NCBI RefSeq assembly: GCF_002113885.1
Contig: NW_018406276.1
Coordinates: forward strand, 128,572-192,571
DNA: 64,000 nucleotides
Source of the DNA: Mizuhopecten yessoensis
Lineage: Eukaryota
Reading direction: 5' to 3'
In this document: piece by piece, positions 33,753 through 62,149 of the stretch
Numbering within the stretch: the first letter of the stretch is position 1
How the letters are laid out: the number at the start of each line of letters is the position of its first letter
Program-made: the position numbers and the translations under genes
The notes under the pieces: generated by a model
The model's database searches: none
What the model was told of the DNA's origin: nothing
What the model saw: the letters and a program-made list of their open reading frames with translations, nothing else

Positions 33753-35333
33753 TCACAATATTTCTCTGTCAGTCATAGTACCTTTCTCCAACTCCTGTAG
33801 CTTCTGGATGGCGTCATCTTTGCGTACATAGAACAGAGAACATGATTCCTTGTCTATGAGATAATTTACACTTGGGTGTAATTCATCTTCATGTGGGGCG
33901 GACAGATCTACTATAAGACGTGGTTTCCCAGAGTATTTTCCCACACCTACGCCTATGGGGCTTAAACGGTATTTATCGAAAGTAAACGTTCGAATGGACC
34001 CTGTAAAACTCCCTTCTCCACTTCGCTTTGAATTAATTTATCCACCAAATCCGACTGTGTTATCGCAGACTGAAGATTTTTACACTCCTTTGTTGGTAGC
34101 TCGGTTTTTGATATAAGAGTGTCAAAACCTTTGGACAATCCTTAACACAGGTAATCTATAAACATTTTGTCTGGGTGGAGATCAAGTTCTGTACGGAGTT
34201 GGTCTATATTTACAGGTGTGTTAACGTGTACGTAATTGTCCTCTATCAGTCATTGGTTCTGTTGTGTGTTGTTTTGGACTCCTGTCCCCGATTTATTGGG
34301 TTGCGATCCATTGTTGCCGCCTTTGCACGAATCTGCCCCATGGCTAGTAGATTTACAAGACGTGCAGGCATGATAGAAGAAACAACCATCGCCTCGTGAA
34401 CATTTCCCCGAATTGAAGTTGGTACACAATTCTCTTTTTGTTGTTAAACATTGTTACACATTTCACTTTTTGTCTGTCGAATATATCGGTATCCCTGCCT
34501 TGATAACCCTGTTGGTTTGTAATTTGTGCGCCTCCATTTCCATAATGTAAGTCTTTTTGTACCTTTTTTCGGGGCAGAAAGCAGTGTTGTGTGACGTCAA
34601 ATTGCACAATTGACAAGAGTTCACCCTAGTGTTTCCCATGATCATGGCCAGTAAACCATTATCCTTTAGGACCCAGTCCACCTTGCCTATATTATCATTT
34701 AATGCCGCTGCTGCCCTAGCCGAAAACTGGCAGTGGTAATCGTAGAATTTCCCCCCGTAAACATTAGAAATTTCTACGATATTGACTTCATATCTATCCA
34801 GTTCAATCCTCCCATGGGGGGCTTTCTTGTACACCGTTCTTTTGTACTTCCCGAAAACGTTTATAAACTTGCTGATAGTCAATGATTTTGCAAGTCTGGG
34901 GTCTTCTGTTTCATTTAATGTAATGTTTATAGCCGAGCCGTCCCTATCGTAAACCTCCCTGGGTTTGTGTCTCGGCATTAGAAATTGCGCCAGATTGACG
35001 TCTTGTCCTTCCCAAATAAGTTTCTCTGGGATACTGTCTATGTGGGGGATTGATTCTGAGGGAATACCGAACTCTGATATGGGCAGTCTGTACCCACCTG
35101 TTGCAGACGTAGCTCGGGTATACTCCTTCTCGTCTGGCTCTGTCTCAGGGTTGACTGCAGTGTTTGTAGTTGTCGGTGATACTGTGGGGACATTTCTTGT
35201 CTTCATAATCCCTAGCACAGCAGTCTGCAGTCCCGCGACTGTCTGCTGCATGGATTTCATTGCCTCCATCATGTGTTTGACAGCTTCTGTGTTTTGATCC
35301 ATGGGCGCAGCCATATTTGTTGGTGACGTCACG
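33753..35333 (-). mobile_element. DIRS/Ngaro-type element 3: gag (289-aa ORF) plus 5' part of RT
   Basis: gag core, FYDYHCQFSARAA and Cys/His knuckles, followed by degraded RT 'TPVN..HPD..GFDT..GKYSGKPRLIVDLSAPH'. Confidence 0.85.
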
Positions 35334-43072: not shown

Positions 43073-45047
43073 TCAATCCCGAAGCCTTCCGATACACGTT
43101 GTTACAACAAACAACAAAAAAGGTAAACTACTTGCTTGATTTGAATAATCAAAACAGTTCCATAAACTGCACATTATGCTTAGTGTAATTATTTCTCTAT
43201 TATTGTATAAAAGAATGAAGCTACATAGAAATAGTATGTTAAATTTGTTAAACAATAACAAATCAAATCTACGCTATATCGGCTGAGGTTCAGCTTATCA
43301 TTTTAATGGTCCCAGTGGGGGTATCCCACTACTGACCCTTTAGCCCTTCAGCCAGAGGGAGCTGATCACACAGCATGACCCCCTATACAGCTCAGCTAGT
43401 ACTGATTAGCCTACACTTGTGCAGCTAAAACTAATTATTACTTCTCAGATAAATTGAGATGATATGTCACAATATTTCTCTGTCAGTCATAGTACCTTTC
43501 TCCAACTCCTGTAGCTTCTGGATGGCGTCATCTTTGCGTACATAGAACAGAGAACATGATTCCTTGTCTATGAGATAATTTACACTTGGGTGTAATTCAT
43601 CTTCATGTGGGGCGGACAGATCTACTATAAGACGTGGTTTCCCAGAGTATTTTCCCACACCTACGCCTATGGGGCTTAAACGGTATTTATCGAAAGTAAA
43701 CGTTCGAATGGACCCTGTAAAACTCCCTTCTCCACTTCGCTTTGAATTAATTTATCCACCAAATCCGACTGTGTTATCGCAGACTGAAGATTTTTACACT
43801 CCTTTGTTGGTAGCTCGGTTTTTGATATAAGAGTGTCAAAACCTTTGGACAATCCTTAACACAGGTAATCTATAAACATTTTGTCTGGGTGGAGATCAAG
43901 TTCTGTACGGAGTTGGTCTATATTTACAGGTGTGTTAACGTGTACGTAATTGTCCTCTATCAGTCATTGGTTCTGTTGTGTGTTGTTTTGGACTCCTGTC
44001 CCCGATTTATTGGGTTGCGATCCATTGTTGCCGCCTTTGCACGAATCTGCCCCATGGCTAGTAGATTTACAAGACGTGCAGGCATGATAGAAGAAACAAC
44101 CATCGCCTCGTGAACATTTCCCCGAATTGAAGTTGGTACACAATTCTCTTTTTGTTGTTAAACATTGTTACACATTTCACTTTTTGTCTGTCGAATATAT
44201 CGGTATCCCTGCCTTGATAACCCTGTTGGTTTGTAATTTGTGCGCCTCCATTTCCATAATGTAAGTCTTTTTGTACCTTTTTTCGGGGCAGAAAGCAGTG
44301 TTGTGTGACGTCAAATTGCACAATTGACAAGAGTTCACCCTAGTGTTTCCCATGATCATGGCCAGTAAACCATTATCCTTTAGGACCCAGTCCACCTTGC
44401 CTATATTATCATTTAATGCCGCTGCTGCCCTAGCCGAAAACTGGCAGTGGTAATCGTAGAATTTCCCCCCGTAAACATTAGAAATTTCTACGATATTGAC
44501 TTCATATCTATCCAGTTCAATCCTCCCATGGGGGGCTTTCTTGTACACCGTTCTTTTGTACTTCCCGAAAACGTTTATAAACTTGCTGATAGTCAATGAT
44601 TTTGCAAGTCTGGGGTCTTCTGTTTCATTTAATGTAATGTTTATAGCCGAGCCGTCCCTATCGTAAACCTCCCTGGGTTTGTGTCTCGGCATTAGAAATT
44701 GCGCCAGATTGACGTCTTGTCCTTCCCAAATAAGTTTCTCTGGGATACTGTCTATGTGGGGGATTGATTCTGAGGGAATACCGAACTCTGATATGGGCAG
44801 TCTGTACCCACCTGTTGCAGACGTAGCTCGGGTATACTCCTTCTCGTCTGGCTCTGTCTCAGGGTTGACTGCAGTGTTTGTAGTTGTCGGTGATACTGTG
44901 GGGACATTTCTTGTCTTCATAATCCCTAGCACAGCAGTCTGCAGTCCCGCGACTGTCTGCTGCATGGATTTCATTGCCTCCATCATGTGTTTGACAGCTT
45001 CTGTGTTTTGATCCATGGGCGCAGCCATATTTGTTGGTGACGTCACG
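43073..45047 (-). repeat. Exact duplicate of 33359-35333 (element 3 gag-RT plus flank)
   Basis: Identical ORF set shifted by 9714 bp; the first copy ends at the N at 35334. Confidence 0.92.
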
Positions 45048-45124
45048 TGCTTAAACAGTTCAAGAACTGTTCAGGAACTGTTCTTGAACGTTAAACGAGA
45101 CAAACTGTTCTTGAACTTCTTGTT

Positions 45125-45630
45125 CAAGAACAGTTCTTGATTTATTCAAGAACAATAGTCTCAAACAATCAAGAACAGTTCTTGAACTTTATTCTAAGAA
45201 CAATTCAAGAACAGTTCTTGATTTATTCAAGAACAATAGTCTCAAACAATCAAGAACAGTTCTTGAACTTTATTCTAAGAACAATTCAAGAACAGTTCTT
45301 GATTTATTCAAGAACAATAGTCTCAAACAATCAAGAACAGTTCTTGAACTTTATTCTAAGAACAATTCAAGAACAGTTCTTGATTTATTCAAGAACAATA
45401 GTCTCAAACAATCAAGAACAGTTCTTGAACTTTATTCTAAGAACAATTCAAGAACAGTTCTTGATTTATTCAAGAACAATAGTCTCAAACAATCAAGAAC
45501 AGTTCTTGAACTTTATTCTAAGAACAATTCAAGAACAGTTCTTGATTTATTCAAGAACAGTTTTAAGTCTCAAACAGTCGAGAACAGTTCTTGAACTTTA
45601 TTCTAAGAACAATTCAAGAACTGTTCTTGA
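45125..45630. repeat. 81-bp tandem array built from subterminal repeats, about 6 copies
   Basis: 27-aa period in ORF 45137-45688; each unit contains two TCAAGAACAGTTCTTGA palindromes. Confidence 0.9.
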
Positions 45631-45956
45631 ACATTCCTTAAAAGTAGTTTTAACAACTGCAACATATCAATATCAGAATTTTATATAAGTGTTACATGTA
45701 CATTTGTATAATACAAAGTAATTAGACACTAGATGTTGAATCTACATGCCAAATGCATCATTGATGATCAATACAAAAATAATGTATGCAAGTCAAGATA
45801 TTTGACAGAACAAAAATACTATTTAAAGAAACCTTGAAACAAAAACCAATATACTCAAAAAATGTTGGGGAATCTCTACAAAAAAGTTTGTATCAAATAA
45901 TCCAAACAAATGAAAGGCCGATCAGAAAAACAGAACAACATGATGACAGTCAGGCA

Positions 45957-48900
45957 CTAAACTATTGGATCACTGCAAGTTTTACTTGACCGACGTTCCA
46001 TCTTCACAAGATTGTCAAACTTTTTTTTGAAAGTGTTCCTGCTGATGGAGCATTTCAGTAGCAGAACCTGCTCCACCAGCTTCACTCTTTCTGGATCAAG
46101 TGGGGGCCTTGCTTTCCCAGGGGAGTGGAATGTTTTTTTTCCAGTCCTAGAACAGGACACAAGGTCCTGTCTTGAAAAAACTGTGAGAGTAATTCTCCTC
46201 ATACACTCGTTGATTTCTTTTTCCAAGTTCCCAATATGACCCACAGATTTCAGTAAGTTGTCCACTGTCAATGTGGAGGACGAAGCTGTTGAGGTCAGTG
46301 TAGTGCTGGAGGAACTACCCTCTGTAGTAGCAGGATTACTGTTTTGACATGTTCCAGAAAGTTCAGAAAATTTCCTCTTCAAAGACTTAAGGGAGGACCT
46401 TAAGTCTTTCACCTCCCTTTCCAGATGGTCAACCCTCTTCTCCAGCCTTCGACTGCCACTGAAAAATATGAAAATTAAAAAACATACAAAATATAAGATT
46501 TAAAACCAAATACCTATGCGGGTAAATTAATCAGACAGTTAATAAGCCTTAAAAATATTGGGCCTCTAGTCTAAGTTCTGCAGATCACTGATAACATTTT
46601 ATTAAATAAATAATTTATGGTTTAACAGATATTATATATATAAAATAAACTTTCCTTGAGGATGCTAGAAAGTTTGTTATCAAGTTTTATTTGTTTATTT
46701 ATATGTTTGACAAGTAATAATATTTACCTAGGACGCAAATTGGAAATGTCTTTCTTTAAGTTTGAATGCTGTTCTTCACCTGTAAATACAAAAATAATCT
46801 GACATTCAACCATCAGAATAAAAAATACTCCAGCTGTCTCTCCATTACGTTACATTATGTAGTTCATCATTGATTCAACCAGATTTGTCTGATTGAAACC
46901 AAACTTTGGGTTGCGGTGTTAAAAACAACCCTCACGTTCAATCTGCTGTCCAATAGAAGGGTCTAGACTGGCTGTATTCAGCAACACTCTACCTAAGGTC
47001 CCAGTGTTTATTTCCTGTTATATAAATTGGACACCACAACATAAATTGTGTACTATAGGAGTTTGTCAAATACCTATGAATGTCAGTTGTATTAGGTCTC
47101 TGTTATGGTTTATATTGGTCGCCAATACTGTAGATGTACCTTTCAGGGGTCAACATTAAGCACAATTTTCACTTGTCTAGTCGCACAAGTTACTATCAGA
47201 TCTAACTTGTCCAAACACTTGTAAACTGTCGGAAGTATTTCTTTCAAATATCAAAATAGACGAATATTTAGAAAAAGATTACAAAAGGTAATTGTATAAA
47301 CACAGAAATCAAGCTTTGTTCAACAACCTCAAGTGAAGAGACAGTAGCAAATATATGGGTTATGACACTAGGAGATACATTTCTCTGATTCTACTCGATT
47401 TGCTCGTAATCATTACGACTTTTAAATGATACTAGCACATGTTTTATAATATTAGCACATGTGTTATATTAAGAGTGGTTTTGTGATATTACGAGAAGTT
47501 ATGATTACCTGTGGGCACAGAGCCAAATTTTAGGTATAAGATGTAATATTACTTTGGAAGTCAACATTTACAATTGAATTTAGAAAAATATAATAAAATT
47601 AATCCACATTTTCATTATCATTTTGAGAAACGGACAATTTCATTTACAAATCTACTTGTCCCATCGGACAAGTACACAGTAAAAAACACTTGTCCGACCA
47701 CAAAATCACCTGGACGGATAAGTCAGGCAAATGTTAATCTTGAGCCCTGCCTTTGGAGACCCGGGTGTAAGCTATGTGCGACGTCATGCCATCTTTTGAA
47801 ATTTCTGATAGCTCTTATATTCTGGTCCTTCACATCCTCTGTCAAAATAGAAACTTGACTTTTATCTGTACATTAAAATCTATTTCATGGTGGGGGCAAA
47901 AAAATCAGTATGATTTGGACTCACCTTGGTCTTGCTCCTTTCTAATCGGCTGGGTGTTCATTTCCTCCTGAGTGGTGATGGTGTCTCGTTCTTCAATGAC
48001 CGCCAACTGAACTTCCATTTCTTCAATGACCACCGGCTGGATGTCCATTCCTTCATTTGTTAATCTACATGTATCTCTTTCTTTGTCTGTTAAAAAGCGA
48101 GTGTTTTAATACATCATGACACATTTAAAGTTTTTTTTTGTGGTTGACAGAAATTAACACTTGCTAATAGCATAATGTTTCAGACTAGATTGCAAATACA
48201 ACAAATTGCTATAGCCCATTTACAACTAGCAACTGAAAGTAAATTTAAATCTTCACAACATAACTTCAGTATTAATGCTTAACTTAGTATTTAGAATCAA
48301 TGTTTAGGTAAATTTAATTAGGTCCAAAATACTTATCTCTTAATCGTGATATGTAAAACATATTTGCATGTCTTAATTGCCTTTAGGCCAAAACAATTAA
48401 GTGCATTTCCTGTTATATATGGGCCTTGACTTCAACAGAACAGTGCTAATTTGAAATTGTCCATAAAATGTTTCAGGTAGGTATGAAAAATCCAGGTAGG
48501 TTAAGGAAAACAGTGACCAGAACACACATATATTTTATTTTGGCCTTATAAAAAAAGTTTGAGTACTATAGATAAACTTCTGTTCATACCAATAAAAGTG
48601 TTGTTCCTAGTAGTATCTGAATCTGCTTCTTGGCTTAAATTTACTACTGCTTCAGCTGCCAGTTCTGGATTCATGTTTTCCTCGTAGGGAAATTTCAAAG
48701 GAAAAACTCCATTTTTCCCCTTCTTCACCATCAAGACTGATCTGTCATCTGAAAATGAGTGTCAAAATGAAAATTGTGCCATAAACATTAAACTGTGATA
48801 AAAGTAGAAAAATCGGTGTGTCACCTCAACCGTAAATTAACAGTGTGGATATAATTCTAATATACCTCTCAAGTTCTTTAACTCCAAAAGTACACAACAG

Positions 48901-49610
48901 AAATTAATTCAAATATTGTACCAATAAGCCAACAATTGTCAAAATCCATCCATTAAAATGTCAGGAAAATGCTTTTAAACGAAGTTGCAAACTGATGCAA
49001 GGAACTAAAAAAAAAACGTGAAAGAAATTTAGCACGTCCCTGTAAATATAGTATAAGTTTTATTCATTTTTTATTTAAACGAATATATAATAACGAGATT
49101 TCGTCGACACAACGGCACATGTATATAAAACATTAATTTCTGTAGAAACGCTGGGTAAAACCTGGGGCATAATAAAATCCTCTGGTTTTACCCACCGTTT
49201 CTACAGAATAAAACATGGCACACTTTCGTCTGCAGCAGGTGAATTTTTGCCTGTCTTTTGGTCATATAAAATGTGATAATTTGCGGACTTTCCTCGTAAT
49301 TTCAAAATACATGAAAATTTTCCTGTGTCTAACAATAAGCATCCTAGTATCGCATCATGCCCTCCCGTATTCGAATATATTTTCAAATTTTGAGTCGGAT
49401 TTTCGATCGGCCTACAAAACAGGCTAGATCTACATACCTGATATTTCAGAAATCCTGGCCCTGTAGGGCTTCTTCCCAAATAGTGCTGTGATGAATTCAC
49501 CTTCCATGTACTGATGAATTGGTTTTCTCGGCAATTTTACGTTATCCAAATTTACCACACTGGTAAATTTGTCATTCCACTGGACTATCGCATACTTCGT
49601 CTCGGGCCAT
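45957..49610 (-). pseudogene. Transposon-borne multi-exon coiled-coil plus BEN-domain protein, frameshifted next to the ATG
   Basis: Exons 49438-49610, 48590-48748, 47925-48086, 46728-46779 and 45957-46458 splice in frame (47751-47838 is a possible extra exon). The last exon encodes a coiled coil and BEN-like 'LTVFSRQDLVSCSRTGKK..RPPLDPERV'. Confidence 0.7.
47144..47749. mobile_element. CAGGG-ended MITE in an intron of the BEN gene
   Basis: TIRs CAGGGGTCAACATTAA / TTAATCTTGAGCCCTG; CCTTT on both flanks. Confidence 0.65.
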
Positions 49611-49981
49611 TTTTCTGTTTATCAACTGGTCAATTGCGCCAAAATCCAATCAGCCAATGAAAACACTTCTCTCAAATGGCTACAGAGGCTGACCAATCAA
49701 GTGACCCGGTATATGCACCAGTGCAAACCGCGACTGCTATTTCGAAAGAATTATCTAGAAAAACGCTATGTTGTTTGGATGAAATTGAATAGAAAATTTT
49801 TATGGTTGAACTATTAATATCAAATTATTGACTTGAAAAATATACAGAAACAACTTTTACCACGTTATTGATTTTAGAGGCTATATACAGAATCATCAGA
49901 ATGTTTACAGTTCGCGGGATCGATGGTAAAATCGACGGTGTTCAAGAGCGCTAACTACACAGACACTGACGGCGATTTAGG
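49611..49981. promoter_or_regulatory. Candidate bidirectional promoter of the CMC element
   Basis: 371 bp between head-to-head ATGs; three CCAAT motifs at about 49646-49698. Confidence 0.5.
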
Positions 49982-52900
49982 ATGTCGGAGTCTGAAAGTT
50001 TAGGAACCAAAGAAGATAATTTTCGAATCGATGTGGATGGAAAATTCAAGTGTTTGATCTGTGAGAACAAACTATCTTCCAAGCAACGAGTGTTAGTTCA
50101 CCTGCACTCGATACATGGATTGAGTAAGTGTATTTTCTAAACGTTCTGACTTCCGTCTTTCAATTTCATCTCTGCCAGTTTGGTTTGCGCCGAAACATTA
50201 CAGTACAGTAGAGAGTAACGTAATGACGTTGCGCATTTCGGCCGTTTTTTTAATAGTCTCAAAGAAGAAAATGAATATTTCTTCAATTCCTATTACGACA
50301 AAGAGAGTCTTACAAGAATTGTAAAAAAAAAATTGAGCCATCACAGCAAACTTAACGGCGATTTTTCGTCGATCAAAACTTAAGTTGGCAGACAGTAGGA
50401 AAACTGTGATATTTTTTAATGCGGAGTTAATTCGGCCTTGATGGATCTGATGGATCTGCATCTGTGACATGTTTCTGCTAGGAATAAGGGGAACTGTCCA
50501 ATCACATTTGCAGTCCTTGCTTTTAAAAGTGCGAACATACTTGATGTTATTTGTGTAAACATGAATACATTTAATTTTTGAATTTTTTTTCATGGATGCA
50601 TATGTGTCGAATAGAGAGGCTAGAAATTAAATAACTTTTTATTGCTATACATGTACATAATATATGAATAGATGGTTTGCATGTGAGCAGGCATTTCTTA
50701 AAATTGATATACAGGTACAAGATTAGATTATGCTTAAAAGTTGCCAATGAAAAATGTTGATGCATTCATGTTTACAAATATCAGCAAGTTTGCCCTTCAC
50801 TTCAAACTCAGTGTTGCTGTCTGACCGTGGAATTTCTTTAATGTCAATAAATTTTGTCGAATTTACAACCGGTAGCATCATTCCTTTCCCATCACTAGGA
50901 CTACACTTTGAAATTCTACTGAAACCGTGGAACATCTTGTGTTTTGTCAAATGTTCATGTGACGCGGGAAATGGATGTTGGATCTAAATTTCGACACTAG
51001 AGAGAGATACGGAATTTCTTGGATCGATCGGATGACTGTAAACTCACATATTTTATTTTTTGGCCTAAGCTTTATTAAACACATGATGCACTGATTTCAA
51101 TCAATGACCCTTCCTCGATCATGTCGAGGTGACAGCAGAAACCTTTAATAACTAGTATGATCCACATGATTTTGTGAAATTTTAGATGCCCACTTATTTT
51201 GATAGTTTCCTTCGGGCTAGGAACAAGTTTTGCATTTATTTGTATGGTATATACTTTGTATTTCAGCACCTGTGAAAAGAGTGAAGAAAAAATATGTGGA
51301 TGATGAGTCTGCTGTGGTTCCAAGATCAACATTTTACAGATGAAAAAAGCAAAAAGTTCATGACAGCAGTGCTAAAAGAAATCTTTATAATCTTGAAGGC
51401 AAGTTTCTTTTAGTTTCTTAGGAGTAATGTCAAACAGTCGAGAAATTACAATTCAACAATTATTTGATTTTTAGGTCACCTGAGCTTTAGCTCAAGTGAC
51501 CTATTGCTATCCGTTTTCGTCCGTCGTCGTCCGTCGTCCGTTAACATTTTACATTTCAAACTTAAAGTCAAGTTCTGCTGGGCCGATTGAACTGAAANNN
51601 NNNNNNNNNNNNNNNNNNNNNNNNNNNNNNNNNNNNNNNNNNNNNNCCACGGCCGCCATTTTGAAAACCTATTTCAAACTTAAAGTCAAGTTCTGCTGGA
51701 CCGATTGAACTTAAAGTTTGTAGGAATGATCGACTCATGGTCCTGACAAAGTGTTGTTATTTTTCAGGTCAATCATAAATCCAATATGGCCGCCACGGCC
51801 ACCATTTTGAAAACATATTTCAAACTTAAAGTCAAGTTCTGCTAGGCCGATTGAACTGAAACTTTGTAGGAATGATTGACTCATGGTCCTGACAAAGTGT
51901 TGTTATTTTTCAGGTCGATCAGAAATCCAATATGGCCACCACAGCTGCCATTTTGGTAAACTATTTCAAACTTAAAGTAAAGATCTACTTGGCCGATTGA
52001 ACTGAAACTTTGTAGGAATGATCGAATCATGGTCCTGACAAAGTGTTGTTATTTTTCGGGTCAATCAGAAATACAATTTGGCTGCCATGGCCGCTATTTT
52101 GCTACTAAGTTCTAATAGGCCGATCTCACTTAAAATTGGTCTAGGAATGATCAGCTCATGGTCCTGACAAAGTTAAGTTAACATTATACTATTTTTTACT
52201 CAAATTGGTACATATTTCAACAACAAAAATAAATACTATAGACTCAGGTGACCGTTAAGGCCCATGGGCCTCTTGTTCTGATACACCTTGCAAGTTGTTT
52301 GTTAGCAATGATTTATGATACCGTAATGAACTATTCAATCAGTTTGCGTATGAAATAGATTCATGATATATTTTGAATTGAAAGTTCAGACTGCTCTGTG
52401 AAGAATTAAAAAAAACCTTTTCCATAATTTAATACAAGGAACATTTTTTTTATAATACAAGTATTTCTGAAAATGTTAATTTGTTAAATCTTATACTATT
52501 TTCTCTTTTCAGGAGATTTCATTAATGACCAGCCGTCAACATCTCAAGAAAATCTCAGTCATAGTCAATCATATGGATGCTCTGATGAGGAATCATTTGA
52601 ATCTGGCCATACACCATCACCTGATGAACAACTTCCAATTTGTGTTGAACAGAATGATACACCTACAGTTACTCTTGAGACTAGTACACTTCTAATGACC
52701 CCTGAAAAGCAAAATACTTACAATCTTTCATCATCATTACCAAACATTGACTCAGACTCAACAAGTGCTTTTTCACCTGATGTAGACTCAGTTTCTGAAT
52801 TTTCATTTTCAACAGATAGTGAATCAGTAGTTCTTGGGTTTTCTGATAATGATACCAGTTCTTCATGTCTTGATGACCATTCATCAAGCTTTTCTTCATC

Positions 52901-55757
52901 AGACTCATTTGATACAATTTCATCAGCAAGTGAGACAGAAGATAATAATGATGCGGGCATTCCAGAAAATGAATATCAAGCTCTCACTCTTTTATCTTGT
53001 TTTTTACGGAACCAGTTTTCGGCGAGTACAAGCAAAGATGTAATACAGACTATAAAAACAATGTTTAAACATCATGAGGACATTTCGAAGCTGGACTTTG
53101 GCCAAATGATGTCCTATGTTGACACTACACCAGTCAGAGAAGTACATTATTGTATAAAGTGCAATACTGTCTTTCCAGGTGACAAGGATGTTTTTCAATG
53201 CCAAACTACCAATTGTGATGGTCTCCGTTATAAAGGTGTATTGTCAAACCAACAAAGCAAGTCCAGACAGCCAAATCAGAGCTTTGTGTTTAGTGATATT
53301 AGGAAACAGCTGATTGATCTTCTCAAAACACCAGGTGATTTTACGTTTAGTTTAGTTTTAGTTTGTTGTGATTTATGACAATAATTTTGCTTTTGTAAAA
53401 TATTTTTTTTTCCTGAAAGCGACATAACAAAACCTGAATTAAATTTAAGTGTCACTGTATATAGTTATATATACAGTAACATCTGAACCTCATTAATTTG
53501 TATAACTCAGAAGACCCTGTTTTATTTGAAATTTTTCCGAGGTCCCAACCAAACTTTACACTATACAGTACTGGATGAAAATATAATGGAGTGTCGTTGA
53601 TAATCATATGATCACAAATTTGTTTTTATTTATATAATGCATTAGATACATGTACAATGCAAATTTATAAACCTATATATATATATGATGCATTAGTTTA
53701 ATTCAAAATGTGTTGTCTTTAATGTTTTTATTTATTTATTACGGGACACTGAGAGTGACTCTAATATTGTTTTACATATATTATATATAGCACATGGTAG
53801 ATCTTTCTGGCATTACCCGTGTCATACCCGTGTCACTTATTAGTCCAGTAGAGTGAAGAAGAGATAAAAAGGTTAAATCCCTCTTAATTTATGTATATAA
53901 TAAAGAAATACTAAAATTATATTATTTTTTTCAGGAATTTGGGAAGATATTCAAACTACTAAAGCAGAATCCTATGAAAGATTTCAATCTGGATCAACCC
54001 TTATCACAGACATTTCTGATGGCAGGGAGTACCAAGCTTTGATGAAGGAGGGCGGGTTTCTTGACCCTAAAACACAGAACATCACAGCAGTGTTTAACAC
54101 TGATGGTGTGAACTTATATTCCTCATCAAAGGTGGAATTATGGCCTATATTTTTAGCTGTAAACGAGCTTAGTCCTCCAAAACGCTTTTGCAGGGATAAC
54201 ATCTTGCTTGTGGGAATATGGCAGGGTAAAGAAAAAACCCCTTTCAATCCATTTTTCAGGATCTTCAGTGAGGATATGAACTCACTGTATAATGTTGGTG
54301 TTGATGTTCAAATTGGAGATGAAGCTTACAATGTGAAGCTTGCAATTATATGTGGCATTGCTGATTTACCAGCTAAAGCAGAAATCCTCAATATGTCATA
54401 TTTCAATGGATCACATGCTTGTATCAAGTGTGAGGAGCCTGGGATGACGGCACAGCAAGGGAAAGGATACGCAAGATGTTTTCCATATAGACTTCAGGGA
54501 GCACGGTATCCAGATCGAAATCATGCAGACGTATTGGTCAACATGGAAAATGATTCTGCAAGAAATAGAGAAAAGGGTTTCAAAGGAGAATCTGGACTCA
54601 AACATTTAGAAAGTTACAACCTTGTACTTGGAACAGTTCCAGATTACATGCATGGCGTACTTCTGGGGGTTACCAAATCACTTATGAACAAATGGTTTTC
54701 TCCATCACAGAGTGGCAAAAATTACTTTATTGGCAACAAATTGAAAGTAATTTCAGAAAAAATGAAGCAGATGAAACCACCAGACAGTATTGAGAGGCTA
54801 CCAAGGGACCTGGAAAAGCATTACAGCCACTTCAAAGCGACAGAACTACAATCTTGGCTCTTATATTATGCTTTTCCATGTTTGCTAGGCATTCTCAAGG
54901 ATGAATTTCTTGAAAACTTCTTGTGTCTCTCTGAAGGTGTCCATATTCTTCTTGGAGACTGCATTAATCAACAATCTCTGAAGAAAGCCATTGATCTCTT
55001 GGATCAGTTTTATTCTGCGTTCCAGAATCTTTATGGTGACGGCTCATGTGGTCTGAACATCCACAACACCAGTGTGCACCTTGCAGAGTATGTGAAGCTT
55101 TGGGGACCATTATGGGCATGGAGTTGTTTTCCGTTTGAGGATGCAAATGCTCAACTTCTCCAAGCTGTTCATGGAACAGGACTGGTTTTGAAACAAGTAA
55201 TGGCTTATAGACAGGCGCAATCTTGCATCCGGAAGAGAGGTCTTGCGCTTAAAAAGAAAGAAGGATGGAAGATAACGTACGAAGCAAATAACTGTGATGT
55301 TGCTGGTATGCTAAAGTCGGTAAAGCTCCAGGAAATGGAAAATGAGGTCAAGGAACAATTAATCACAGTGCATGATAGCTTCAAGTTAAACAATTTGAAG
55401 AAAATGGACAGGATAGTCGTGAATGAAAGACGGTTTTATTCAGAAAACTATAGTCGTATGAAAAAGAGGATATCCAGTGTAGTTCTGTATAACCAACATG
55501 AAATTGGATCAGTGAAGTATTTCATTTTATGTGATGATTTGACTTTCTGTATTATTGAAAAAATGGAGAAGATTCCACCATCTCAACTTCAAATCAGAGT
55601 AGCAAGCCATTTCATTCCTGTAAGATGCACAAAAACCTTGACAGTGGTGAATGTTGAACAGCTTCGTGAAGTCCTTGTTTACCTCAGCTCAAGTGCAATG
55701 AACTGTTCATTTGTTGTCCGAATGCCAAACAACTATGGCCATGCAGTCTTTAAGTGA
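49982..55757 (+). pseudogene. CACTA/CMC DDE transposase with an N-terminal C2H2 finger, ~972 codons, one premature stop
   Basis: Exons 49982-50123, 51267-51398 (GC donor), 52513-53334 and 53935-55757 join in frame. Motifs: DISDGREY, NTDG, DLPAKA, FNG..CIKC, DYMHGVLLG, FKATE, GPLWAWSCFPFE. In-frame TGA at 51341. Confidence 0.88.
51469..52277 (+). mobile_element. HINE/Helentron-type element in transposase intron 2
   Basis: AGGTCACCTGAG..CTCAGGTGACC subterminal inverted repeats, a (CGTC)n tract, ~140-bp core repeats and a 3' hairpin AGGCCCATGGGCCT. Confidence 0.8.
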
Positions 55758-57109
55758 ACAATCAGACTGGTAGACTGGTAGTTTTATATATATTGAAATC
55801 CTAATGTAAGCAAACATAATTTGATATATATACTGAAGTTTGTTTTTAGTTAAACTAATGTTACAATGTATTATTAGTGAAAGACATATACAGTTTTAAT
55901 TTCTAATTGTTCAAGATAATTTTTTTTTTTAATTTTTGGAAAGTGATTAATAGAATTTGAAGATGTGATTAATTAATGAACAGGCCTTTCTCATAGACAT
56001 TTTTAGTTACCTGGAACAAAAGAAAAACTACAATCAGTATTAAATAATTATATGTAACAGAAAAAAATGACATTTTGAATTGTTACTACAATTTCATTGT
56101 TATAAATATTGTTATATATACATGTATACCACATAAATCAAATTTATCACCAATAAAAGGTATATATATATATGTATTAGAACTTCATTAAGTGCTTTAG
56201 TTAAATCACAAAACTATTCAAGAACTCGATAGTTCTTTAATTGTTCTTAATATAATCTTTAAGCATTCTAATCAAGAACATTTAAAGAACACATCTTCGT
56301 AAAACATTCTTAAATCTAGTCAAGAACACAATAAGAACATTTTAAGAACACTTTTGTTCTTGAGCTGTTCTTAAATTTAGTCAAGAACACATAAGGAACA
56401 TTTTAAGAACACTTTTGTTCTTGAACTGTTCTTGAAAATGTTCATGAACTTTTCAAGAACAGTTTAAGAACTTCAGCAGTTCTTAACCTGTTCTTGAATA
56501 GTTCAAGAACAGTTTCAAGAACTGAAGTTCAAGAACACGGTAGATTTTTTAGTTAAGAACAGTTCAAAAACAGTTCTTGATGTTCTTGAACTGTTCAAGA
56601 ACTGTTCTTAAAATCAAGAACTTGGTTTCGCAGGGGAAGCCATTGTCCACAAGTTTACCAAGTTTACAAAGTTTATGTATAGTTTTACACTCTAAGACTC
56701 CTCTCCTGAGGCTTGGAAACACACGAAACGTAGCTAAATATATCCTTTAGTCTTTCTAGTTTCAGATGGTGTTAGATAGTCCAAGTAAATTATTATAAAT
56801 TATGGTAACTTAGAGGAATAAAAAATAGCCATTACGATAAATGACTCACTGGTTACTGATGCTGCGATGCTAGGGTACTGGTCAAGCAGTCTTTGTATAG
56901 ACTGACAAATCGGTAGCTGGTCCTTTGTGTTGACTGACCAATCAACTTCCTCGAGTCAGGCCCATATTCTGGATATGTACAACTGACCAGGCCTTCCGCG
57001 GGATGTACGAATGGGTTACTTGTCTGTTACAGCATGTTACAATATTGACGGCATTACCTCATCTGCATCAAGACAAAAGTCCATGGAACTCAAGGAAACT
57101 NTTTTTTTG

Positions 57110-60370: not shown

Positions 60371-60457
60371 AATTTTTTCACAAGATTTTTACCCCTAAAG
60401 TACTAAAAATGTGGGCCCATGTTCTATTATTGATGACGTCTATACAATAGTGACGTN

Positions 60458-61126
60458 TCTTTCTGGATCAAGTGGGGGCCTTGCTTTCCCAGGGGAGTGG
60501 AATGGTTTTTTTCCAGTCCTAGAACAGGACACACAAGGTCCTGTCTTGAAAAAACTGTGAGAGTAATTCTCCTCATACACTCGTTGATTTCTTTTTCCGA
60601 GTTCCCAATATGACCCACAGATTTCAGTAAGTTGTCCACTGTCAATGTGGAGGACGAAGCTGTTGAGGATGTGGAGGTCAGTGTAGTGCTGGAGGAACTA
60701 TCCTCTGTAGTAGCAGGATTACTGTTTTGACATGTTCCAGAAAGTTCAGAAAATTTCCTCTTCAAAGACTTAAGGGAGGACCTTAAGTCTTTCACCTCCC
60801 TTTCCAGATGGTCAACCCTCTTCTCCAGCCTTCGACTGCCACTGAAAAATATGAAAATTAAAAAACATACAAAATATAAGATTTAAAACCAAATACCTAT
60901 GCGGGTAAATTAATCATACAGTTAATAAGCCTTAAAAATATTGGGCCTCTAGTCTAAGTTCTGCAGATCACTGATAACATTTTATTAAATAAATAATTTA
61001 TGGTTTAACAGATATTATATATATAAAATAAACTTTCCTTGAGGATGCTAGAAAGTTTGTTATCAAGTTTTATTTGTTTATTTATATGTTTGACAAGTAA
61101 TAATATTTACCTAGGACGCAAATTGG
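60458..61126 (-). repeat. Second partial copy of the BEN-gene last exon and intron
   Basis: Near-identical to about 46087-46744 with small indels; starts at the N at 60457. Confidence 0.88.
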
Positions 61127-62149
61127 ATTATACGATTTATATTTCAACTAAAGTTAATGTTTCTGAAGCGTAACCAAATCTGGTCCTCTTACACGTCTCA
61201 CCTTGTGGTTGCGTTAATTCGTCCTCGAAACATCTGTATGCCGTATTTAAAGTGAACTCCTGTTGTGGTGGAGATGAAGTTGGGGGCACATGTGTCACTG
61301 ATGTGGCCATCTGTCTTTCGCTACCGGCGGCTGGTGCCACTGGAAGCCTGGATTGGGAGTCTTTTTTTTCTTATTCTCTGATGCAACCTGTTTTGCCTAT
61401 TAAACATAAAACGGAAGACAACAGAGGATTAGAGGGGTTCTTTCTCGTTTTCATCTTTGGTCCTATCGGTTACCCGAGTAAAAATATATATACCTTATAA
61501 ATTAGGGGTGCCACGATAAACCGGTATACCAGTACACAGTCACCAAATATTTTATTCCTAGTGTTTATTGTTCAATGCTTTCATTGTTTTGTTGTCTTAT
61601 TTTTGAAAATTTAAATAAAACATTGTTCCAAATCTGGTCCTCTTACACCTCTCACCTTGTGGTTGCGTGGATTCGTCCTCGAAACGTCTGTATCCAACGT
61701 GTACTCCTGTTGTGGTGGAGACGAAGTTGGGGGCACCTGTGTCACTGATGTGGCTATCTGTCTCTCGCTACTGGCGGCTGCTGCTGCCACTGGAAGCCTG
61801 GATTGGGAGTCTATTCTATTCTCCAGTCGCTGATAGCACTCCTGTAATGTAGCTACACTTTCTGATAAGCTCGTAACCAAGTTCACCAAATGGTTATTAC
61901 TACTCGACGACTCGGATTTATGTTGAGATGCAGTGTTTACAGACTCACGTGAAACATCCGGTCCTCCATCTTGCCGCGATGCATTGTGGTATACCGCACC
62001 TCTCCTGTGTGGTCTGACGGGGGTAGAAGTTCTCGCTTCCCGTAACTTCTTGACTAAACACATATGATAAGATCCAGGCCTGAGAGAATGCAGTTATTCC
62101 AGGACCCTAGTAATAGTCCAATTCTCTAGTAATTATTGATATTTTGCAT

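Follow-up and report, generated by a model that had tools for sequence, protein, structure and literature searches.

Results

Organization of the element

We report that positions 45047-56636 of a 64,000-bp stretch of the scallop Mizuhopecten yessoensis genome (the window; C2949:128572-192571 in the 988 Mb and 82,659 contigs that were searched) are a single transposon copy of the CACTA-Mirage-Chapaev (CMC) superfamily (tnp2 DDE). An NCBI protein matched at 100% identity is from this species (LOC110451260). Two divergent genes lie within it, a transposase gene on the plus strand and an accessory gene on the minus strand whose predicted product ends in a BEN domain, and arrays of a short motif fill the regions inside its ends. 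It is very probable, in our judgement, that this is a CMC element with two genes and that the BEN gene is an integral part of it. Its features are as follows (position in the window, strand where one applies, description):

45047-56636, plus: transposon copy; right terminus intact, approximately 79 bp gone at the left; alignments with other copies are bounded by 45047 and 56636
45047-45640: left subterminal repeat region; 34 TCAAGAAC matches and 14 palindromic pairs
45960-46458, minus: accessory last exon; coiled coil, disordered linker and BEN domain; stop codon 45957-45959; acceptor placed from the sequence only
48549-48761, minus: candidate middle exon (open frame); the only internal minus-strand frame conserved with family C5391
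49438-49610, minus: accessory exon 1; predicted Tudor-like beta-barrel; ATG at 49610; donor G/GTATGT
49611-49981: spacer of 371 bp; CCAAT boxes at 49646, 49654 and 49693
49982-50123, plus: transposase exon 1; single C2H2 finger, C-X2-C-X12-H-X4-H; aligns to the N-termini of the Argopecten, Mytilus and Mya homologues
51267 to approximately 51398, plus: transposase exon 2; basic block "PVKR..KKY.D....VPRST.YR"; in-frame TGA; 3' boundary unsure
52515-53342, plus: transposase exon 3; acidic and Ser-rich, then a conserved Cys-rich region; matches NCBI model P0001 and homologues
53934-55757, plus: transposase exon 4; DDE catalytic region (tnp2/Transposase_21, DUF1258), including the stop codon
56218-56621: right subterminal repeat region; 16 TCAAGAAC matches, consensus TTYAAGAACW
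56625-56636, plus: right terminal sequence GTTTCGCAGGGG; conserved at the ends of three related copies (L014, L015 and L017) and in Argopecten, Saccostrea and Mya

The original prediction for this locus had a C2H2-finger transposase head-to-head with a BEN-domain gene across a 371-bp spacer containing CCAAT boxes, and this arrangement was confirmed in each respect: the start codons are at 49982 (plus strand) and 49610 (minus strand), and exactly 371 bp with three CCAAT boxes separate them. From its sequence the spacer is presumed to be a bidirectional promoter. CCAAT(C/G)A boxes were also seen in the spacers of all six loci from other species that were examined.

The transposase gene

Exon 4 matched Pfam PF02992 (Transposase_21; E 1.6e-11, 44.3 bits, cut-off 28.6) and also PF06869 (DUF1258), with the Transposase_21/tnp2 match coming from the plus-strand open reading frame (ORF) at 54039-55757. 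Homologues of exon 4 numbered 285 at E <= 1e-10 and carry PF02992 and PF06869; full-length ones from Argopecten (1032 amino acids), Saccostrea, Mya, Mytilus, Haliotis and Ptychodera align with the scallop gene in four blocks. The finger exon, which by itself gave zf-BED and zf-C2H2 matches below the Pfam cut-offs, aligns with the N-termini of full-length homologues named C2H2-type in UniRef, and the junction between exons 1 and 2 reproduces the H-x-L-T-P-V-K-R motif of the homologues exactly in register. NCBI model P0001 begins at 52327 and does not include the finger, which is likely due to the in-frame TGA in exon 2.

The accessory gene

All searches and structure predictions were run exon by exon, not on a joined spliced product. 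The minus-strand ORF at 45957-46412 matched the Pfam BEN domain (PF10523) with 30.4 bits (cut-off 23.2, E 4.6e-7), and a search of the PDB with a profile of ten homologues returned BEND6 (1.2e-5) and Insv (1.3e-3). The AlphaFold2 (AF2) model of the last exon, which starts with approximately 14 residues of translated intron, had a predicted local distance difference test score (pLDDT) of 83 overall, 88-95 in the BEN helices and 75 in the central loop. When this model was compared with known structures using Foldseek, ranks 1-12 were all BEN domains (Insv, Bsg25A, BANP, NACC1 and BEND6) with probabilities of 0.99-1.00 and root-mean-square deviations of 1.6-3.2 Å for ranks 1-11 and 4.7 Å for rank 12. 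The predicted fold is that of a type I BEN domain, i.e. all-helical with a long helix 5 and an alpha3-alpha4 loop, and both the model and the twelve top matches thus agree with the earlier assignment of this exon. In the same model a long helix (residues 2-50) that matches PDB coiled coils is followed by a disordered Ser/Thr-rich linker and then by the BEN domain. Pfam gave nothing beyond BEN on the accessory protein, and a word-based protein search with the BEN exon returned two short matches only.

Exon 1 encodes a domain of 54-58 residues that has no Pfam match and that AF2 modelled as a five-stranded beta-barrel (pLDDT 93.6). Its best fold matches were the Tudor domains of KDM4A/B and ARID4A/B, with template modelling scores of 0.70-0.74 by query and E-values of 0.08-0.4, which are as weak as expected for so small a domain (54 residues). 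According to this model exon 1 is a Tudor-like barrel, a new detail with respect to the original prediction, and the alignment points to the invariant W7 and Y30, together with a conserved F/Y, as candidate aromatic-cage residues. An anti-silencing role had been named as one option for the accessory protein, and the modelled Tudor-like domain may be one new hint in this direction. Because the phase in which exon 1 stops (phase 1) does not fit that required by the last exon (phase 2), the gene has at least one middle exon; the frame at 48549-48761, which is 39% identical to that of family C5391 (jackhmmer E 2e-20), is a candidate to contain it.

The BEN gene in other copies and other species

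Whether other copies of the element carry the BEN gene had been set as a test of its membership, and it was found in copies, in sister families and in other species. Family C5391, whose transposase is 67% identical to that of the window copy, has the BEN, middle and Tudor exons (the latter 70% identical), a spacer of approximately 370 bp, and then the finger, basic and DDE exons, all in the same order. An internally deleted copy (C466) retains the BEN exon approximately 400 bp upstream of an opposite-strand transposase fragment. Outside M. yessoensis, a BEN exon lies upstream and on the opposite strand of transposase homologues in Argopecten irradians, Haliotis rufescens, Saccostrea cucullata, Mya arenaria (weak) and the icefish Chaenocephalus aceratus, where the annotated neighbour gene has a weak precomputed PF10523 match and the C2H2 finger exon is approximately 330 bp from the BEN start. 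In these species and in Mytilus the annotated distance between the Tudor-like exon and the transposase start is approximately 230-950 bp; in Mytilus only this exon is seen before the contig ends.

BEN identity across the cross-species loci was 26-41%. Between subfamilies the ratio of nonsynonymous to synonymous substitution rates (dN/dS) was 0.2-0.3 for BEN and 0.25 for the Tudor exon. The trees of the BEN domain and of the transposase share a scallop AA/TA clade (support 84/82 and 100/100, respectively), and the median end-branch length was 1.24 for BEN vs 0.5 for the transposase. The BEN gene is a long-standing component of this transposon lineage.

Several further copies and relatives were noted. 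The icefish locus (L035; JAMFTG010000073.1) has a transposase/BEN pair, and 29 TCATGAAC sites follow beyond its BEN gene. The icefish transposase shares 50% identity with that of the scallop and is placed among mollusc lineages in an unresolved part of the tree, and horizontal transfer is possible. In Ptychodera flava a weak Tudor-like frame (E 0.09) lies upstream of the transposase homologue (L034:7817-8047, minus strand). Within the scallop genome, TCATGAAC-family copies at C76751:511295-521365, spanning approximately 10.1 kb, and from C4622:10430 onward (L039, L041 and L047) have an open BEN exon of 170 amino acids and identical ends at different loci. Another relative, beginning with CCCCTGCGAAATGATTATGA, is present in at least ten near-identical copies on ten contigs (L050-L059), each with a different flank, and judged from these sequences it looks like a recently active family.

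Termini and insertion site

Dozens of matches to the element ends and to the transposase are spread across the scallop genome. The right end of the window copy is GTTTCGCAGGGG, and the identical twelve bases close the related copies L014, L015 and L017. At the left, two near-identical copies on contigs C1654 and C5547 (L005 and L006) extend 79 bp beyond 45047 and start with CCCCTGTGAAAA, each at an insertion site of its own. This identifies CCCCTG[C/T]GAAA and TTTC[G/A]CAGGGG as the true termini and shows that the window copy is without its left terminus. The interval given in the original prediction, 45045-56636, agrees with ours within two bases and its right end is the true terminus, while its left end corresponds to a break point, at 45047. 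The same inverted termini, CCCCTG[C/T]GAAA at the left and its reverse complement TTTC[G/A]CAGGGG at the right, were found elsewhere in the scallop genome and in Argopecten, Saccostrea and Mya.

The element had been labelled CACTA/CMC, of which the superfamily stands on account of the tnp2 core. CACTA was searched for at the termini and is absent from both ends, so this part of the label has to be given up: an assignment to CACTA or En/Spm sensu stricto is ruled out by the CCCCTG termini and by the second protein being encoded in a separate gene on the opposite strand.

Target-site duplications of CMC elements are 2-4 bp. The only copy with both ends visible, that on C76751, has the flanks TTT and TTA (a match of 2 bp), and the cross-species end pairs show no clear target-site duplication. 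Both flanks of the window copy are parts of one retroelement-like repeat, and in another copy of this repeat (C5510) the homologues of the two flanks are approximately 420-445 bp apart. This spacing rules out a simple insertion with target duplication at the locus and indicates that a deletion took the left junction together with 79 bp of the element.

The dispersed repeat that hosts the transposon includes a gag-like ORF of 289 amino acids with a CCHC knuckle (C-X2-C-X4-H-X4-C) at 44177-45046 on the minus strand, also seen at 35186-35333. The truncated junction recurs at 94% identity on a 289-bp contig (C35727), which may represent a haplotig or a duplicated junction. An isolated second piece of the family lies 3.8 kb past the element: a 670-bp fragment at 60458-61127 that begins just after a single N at 60457 and is 97.8% identical to 46086-46744, i.e. 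part of the last BEN-gene exon and the adjoining intron.

State of the window copy

The window copy is dead. Its left terminus is gone, neither gene is intact and the RNA data showed no transcripts, and the working two-component system that had been proposed for it is thus not what this locus holds today. The BEN gene has a frameshift after codon 2, caused by an extra base in the C run at 49604-49606; the sister copy on C5547 is in frame at this point (M-A-E-T-K-Y-A-I-V-Q-W), and a contig of run X5 is also one base shorter there. In transposase exon 2 there is an in-frame TGA at 51341-51343, a codon at which the homologues have W or L.

RNA reads were laid out on 45700-51590 using three RNA-seq runs and one metatranscriptome, with approximately 20% of each run read and a match of at least 95% demanded. 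The three raw RNA-seq runs, each from a different study, gave depths of 0-1.4 and no splice joints over 45700-51400, and the metatranscriptome contigs cover exons and introns evenly and look like DNA. With the fraction of reads and the match demanded as above, expression and splicing of the window copy are unconfirmed rather than disproved.

One further feature interrupts the transposase gene:

51476-52254: nested insertion resembling a miniature inverted-repeat transposable element (MITE); inverted ends GGTCACCTGAG and a 146-bp tandem array; contains the assembly gap 51598-51646

The gap falls within the 146-bp array of the MITE, and since the MITE is in the intron between transposase exons 2 and 3 no reading frame crosses it. 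To the left of the gap the array stops in mid-unit, and to the right it starts at unit position 1; the sides differ in repeat phase and are therefore not continuous, with units missing between them. RNA-seq reads from the three runs piled up on the first 180 bp of the MITE to depths of several hundred to more than 1,200, which fits a very abundant repeat, and the MITE family is very abundant in transcripts.

Subterminal repeats

There are 53 matches to TCAAGAAC in the window vs 3.46 expected (the maximum of 100 shuffles was 9), and 50 of these are within 45060-45630 and 56218-56621; that the ends are packed with one 8-mer, as noted before, is clearly the case. Much of the count on the left is due to a young tandem repeat with a unit of 81 bp (6.2 copies, 98% identity, 45123-45630, identified using Tandem Repeats Finder). 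The palindrome CAAGAAC-W-GTTCTTG, which had been taken as the recognition unit, occurs 14 times on the left, where 12 come from the 81-bp repeat, and twice on the right with one mismatch each. It is mostly the outcome of this recent amplification at one end, and the unit common to both ends is the approximately 10-bp TTYAAGAACW. Position weights over 37 right-end sites gave this consensus, with the two A's before GAAC kept better than the preceding C/T.

The short motif is present in direct and inverted orientation in the subterminal arrays, as in CACTA/En-Spm elements, and it differs between families: the window copy has TCAAGAAC; C5391, C4509 and Argopecten have TCTAGAAC along with some TCCAGAAC; several scallop families share TCATGAAC with Saccostrea, Haliotis and the icefish; and the Mya family has CCATGG-type sites. 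Of the 22 scallop BEN-exon matches examined, all but 5 have an array of the NNGAAC motif of their own family following within 1.5 kb. Scallop, oyster and clam have almost the same terminal 11 bp, whereas the subterminal motif varies.

Discussion

A possible division of labour between the two proteins

In intact relatives of the window copy, a CCAAT spacer of approximately 230-400 bp would drive two divergent genes. The product of one would be a four-exon transposase with a C2H2 finger, a basic exon, a Cys-rich region and the tnp2 DDE core, and this protein would recognise the terminal 11-12 bp, CCCCTG[C/T]GAAA, that are conserved across phyla. The other product would be an accessory protein with an N-terminal Tudor-like barrel, a variable middle part, a coiled coil and a C-terminal type I BEN domain, which as a coiled-coil dimer would bind the family-specific subterminal sites (TTYAAGAACW in the present family; TCTAGAAC, TCATGAAC or CCATGG elsewhere). 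By analogy with TnpA of plant En/Spm, the BEN dimer would bring the ends together and mark them for the transposase, and the Tudor-like domain may link the complex to methylated chromatin. We put the probability of the whole statement, i.e. a decayed two-gene CMC element in which the BEN protein reads the repeats, at roughly 0.5, and the TnpA-like role of the BEN protein is plausible, with about even odds on the present comparison.

We infer this division of labour from the combination of a conserved terminus with variable subterminal repeats, from the faster evolution of BEN than of the transposase, and from one column in helix 5. Type I BEN domains use helix 5 and the alpha3-alpha4 loop to read bases, and they are often found as dimers on palindromic sites; some BEN domains, those of type 0, lack DNA binding (PMC8887127). 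The helix-5 column has Q in all copies of the TCATGAAC class, L or F in the TCTAGAAC class and V in the window copy. The faster evolution of BEN is suggestive of a protein that tracks a changing site. Likewise, the weights at the right end, where positions -2 and -1 are conserved above -3, are suggestive of element-specific recognition and not of a generic TTCnnGAA host site.

A number of observations weigh against this reading or limit it. Covariation between the BEN recognition helix and the motif had been proposed as a check, and one column does track the motif; the motif classes coincide with clades, so the correlation rests on approximately two evolutionary events and the comparison is underpowered. 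The binding of the subterminal repeats by BEN is plausible from the sequences, and the finger and Cys-rich region of the transposase itself could bind them. BEN-solo proteins are mostly known as transcriptional repressors, a function that would suit control of the promoter equally well. With essentially no RNA reads and no splice joints over 45700-51400 in the three studies, the exon structure of the accessory gene is a prediction from conservation, most tentative for its middle exons. No BEN exon was found within 10 kb of the Ptychodera homologue, and neither the C76751 flanks nor the cross-species pairs gave a firm target-site duplication, the window copy being without its left junction.

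Alternative explanations

The accessory protein may instead be a regulator that represses or derepresses its own CCAAT promoter, or that counters silencing by the host by means of its Tudor-like domain, with the transposase finger and the Cys-rich region binding the repeats. Every spacer examined has conserved CCAAT(C/G)A boxes, the Tudor-like fold matches readers of histone methyl-lysine, and plant TnpA regulates its own promoter as well (PMC1636069). Moreover, characterised BEN-solo factors are sequence-specific repressors, of which Insv binds a CCAAT-containing palindrome, TTCCAATTGGAA (PMC8887127). Set against this, a single C2H2 finger reads approximately 3 bp and so falls short of a 10-bp site, and the partner that evolves fast along with the fast-evolving repeats is BEN, not the transposase. 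The boxes in the spacers, moreover, look like ordinary CCAATCA-type boxes, which we take to resemble the kind bound by NF-Y, and not like palindromic sites of the Insv type. We consider a purely regulatory protein possible, if on balance unlikely; it would still be a serious rival, and as TnpA has both functions the regulator and cofactor roles would be compatible.

Two other explanations remove the link between the BEN protein and the repeats altogether. The TTCnnGAA-like repeats could be sites for a host factor such as heat-shock factor, in which case neither of the element proteins would read them. Heat-shock elements follow an inverted nGAAn pattern, with which TTCAAGAA, TTCTAGAA and TTCATGAA are compatible, and the central dinucleotide varies among families. 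The position weights nevertheless rule out a reading of the repeats as heat-shock elements: among the right-end sites the C of TTC varies (C in 23 and T in 11 of the 37) and the central AA is kept (30/37 and 28/37), the opposite of what a heat-shock element needs. In addition, the Mya family has CCATGG-type sites without TTCnnGAA, and the units are spaced by 1 or 3 nt instead of being in a contiguous 5-bp register. That a host factor reads the repeats is very unlikely. Hardly credible is, finally, that the BEN gene is a passenger, a captured host fragment with no role in the life cycle of the element. DNA transposons of several superfamilies do capture host fragments, as in Pack-CACTA (PMC6379663), and the BEN gene of the window copy is frameshifted and silent; yet the three-domain gene has the same place and direction in bivalves, in a gastropod and in a fish, it is under purifying selection between subfamilies, the BEN tree is compatible with that of the transposase, and the degree of BEN divergence (26-41% identity) argues against one recent, horizontally spread element.

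Returning to the cofactor model, it can be extended to a joint reading that we regard as doubtful. In this extension the layout of the BEN-solo proteins (Insv, BEND5/6) would share ancestry with the accessory gene, in a lineage at least as old as the split of bivalves and gastropods, and the protein would be a bipartite BEN-Tudor tether, its BEN dimer reading the subterminal sites and its Tudor-like barrel a histone mark; horizontal movement of the element between marine invertebrates and fish may have taken place as well. On this extended reading, the families would constitute a natural set of BEN-DNA specificity pairs, comprising the AA, TA, AT and CA variants of NNGAAC plus CCATGG.

Comparison with known systems

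Among animal CMC elements (Chapaev, Mirage and SmTRC1 of Schistosoma), the scallop element has in common the animal host and the Transposase_21 core, together with its DUF1258 match. SmTRC1 also yields shorter products without DDE, for which no homologues or domains were detectable (PMC1636069); the accessory gene of the scallop lineage differs in being conserved across phyla and in having domains that can be assigned. The accessory proteins of animal CMC elements have been essentially uncharacterised so far, the SmTRC1 study having found no conserved second protein (PMC1636069), and a recent survey of bivalve transposable elements curated two CMC elements (PMC10294476). In full-text searches of one literature library we found no paper that links BEN domains with CMC or CACTA elements, and no description of such an element among papers on BEN domains together with transposons or molluscs or on CMC accessory proteins; Repbase and Dfam were outside this comparison.

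The BEN-solo factors (Drosophila Insv and Elba/Bsg25A; vertebrate BEND5 and BEND6) have a C-terminal type I BEN domain, as predicted for the accessory protein, and in these factors a coiled coil precedes BEN. The best PDB sequence match of the accessory BEN is BEND6 and its best folds are Insv and Bsg25A. The scallop protein differs in being encoded by a transposon and in its extra N-terminal Tudor-like domain, and the base-reading residues of Insv (Ser304, Ala306, Asp351 and Lys354) are not conserved in it, as far as the alignment allows. The sites known for BEN-solo factors are short, in many cases palindromes (PMC8887127). The presence of a BEN domain in a mobile element bears on the origin of the BEN-solo regulators scattered among animals, and its families offer several natural protein-site pairs for studying how type I BEN domains choose their DNA.

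PIF/Harbinger elements, with a transposase and a Myb-like protein, are likewise two-gene cut-and-paste systems with a separate DNA-binding protein, which is thought to recruit the transposase to the ends, and such pairs can be co-domesticated (PMC5339849). They differ in the transposase superfamily, in the fold of the DNA-binding protein and in having no dense subterminal arrays.

The closest parallel in organization is with plant En/Spm and its TnpD and TnpA proteins: both systems have a tnp2-type DDE transposase, subterminal regions filled with a motif in both orientations and a second, non-DDE protein. En/Spm needs both proteins; TnpA is a regulator of the promoter as well as the protein that binds the subterminal repeats (PMC1636069 and references therein). 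In the scallop element the termini are CCCCTG[C/T]GAAA and not CACTA, the two proteins come from divergent genes and not, as in En/Spm, from alternative splicing of one transcript, the accessory protein combines a Tudor-like domain, a coiled coil and BEN, and the transposase has an N-terminal C2H2 finger. The resemblance to TnpA would thus be one of role only. With a second gene that is conserved across molluscs and a fish, and in which three domains can be named, the lineage provides a testable animal counterpart of maize TnpA/TnpD.

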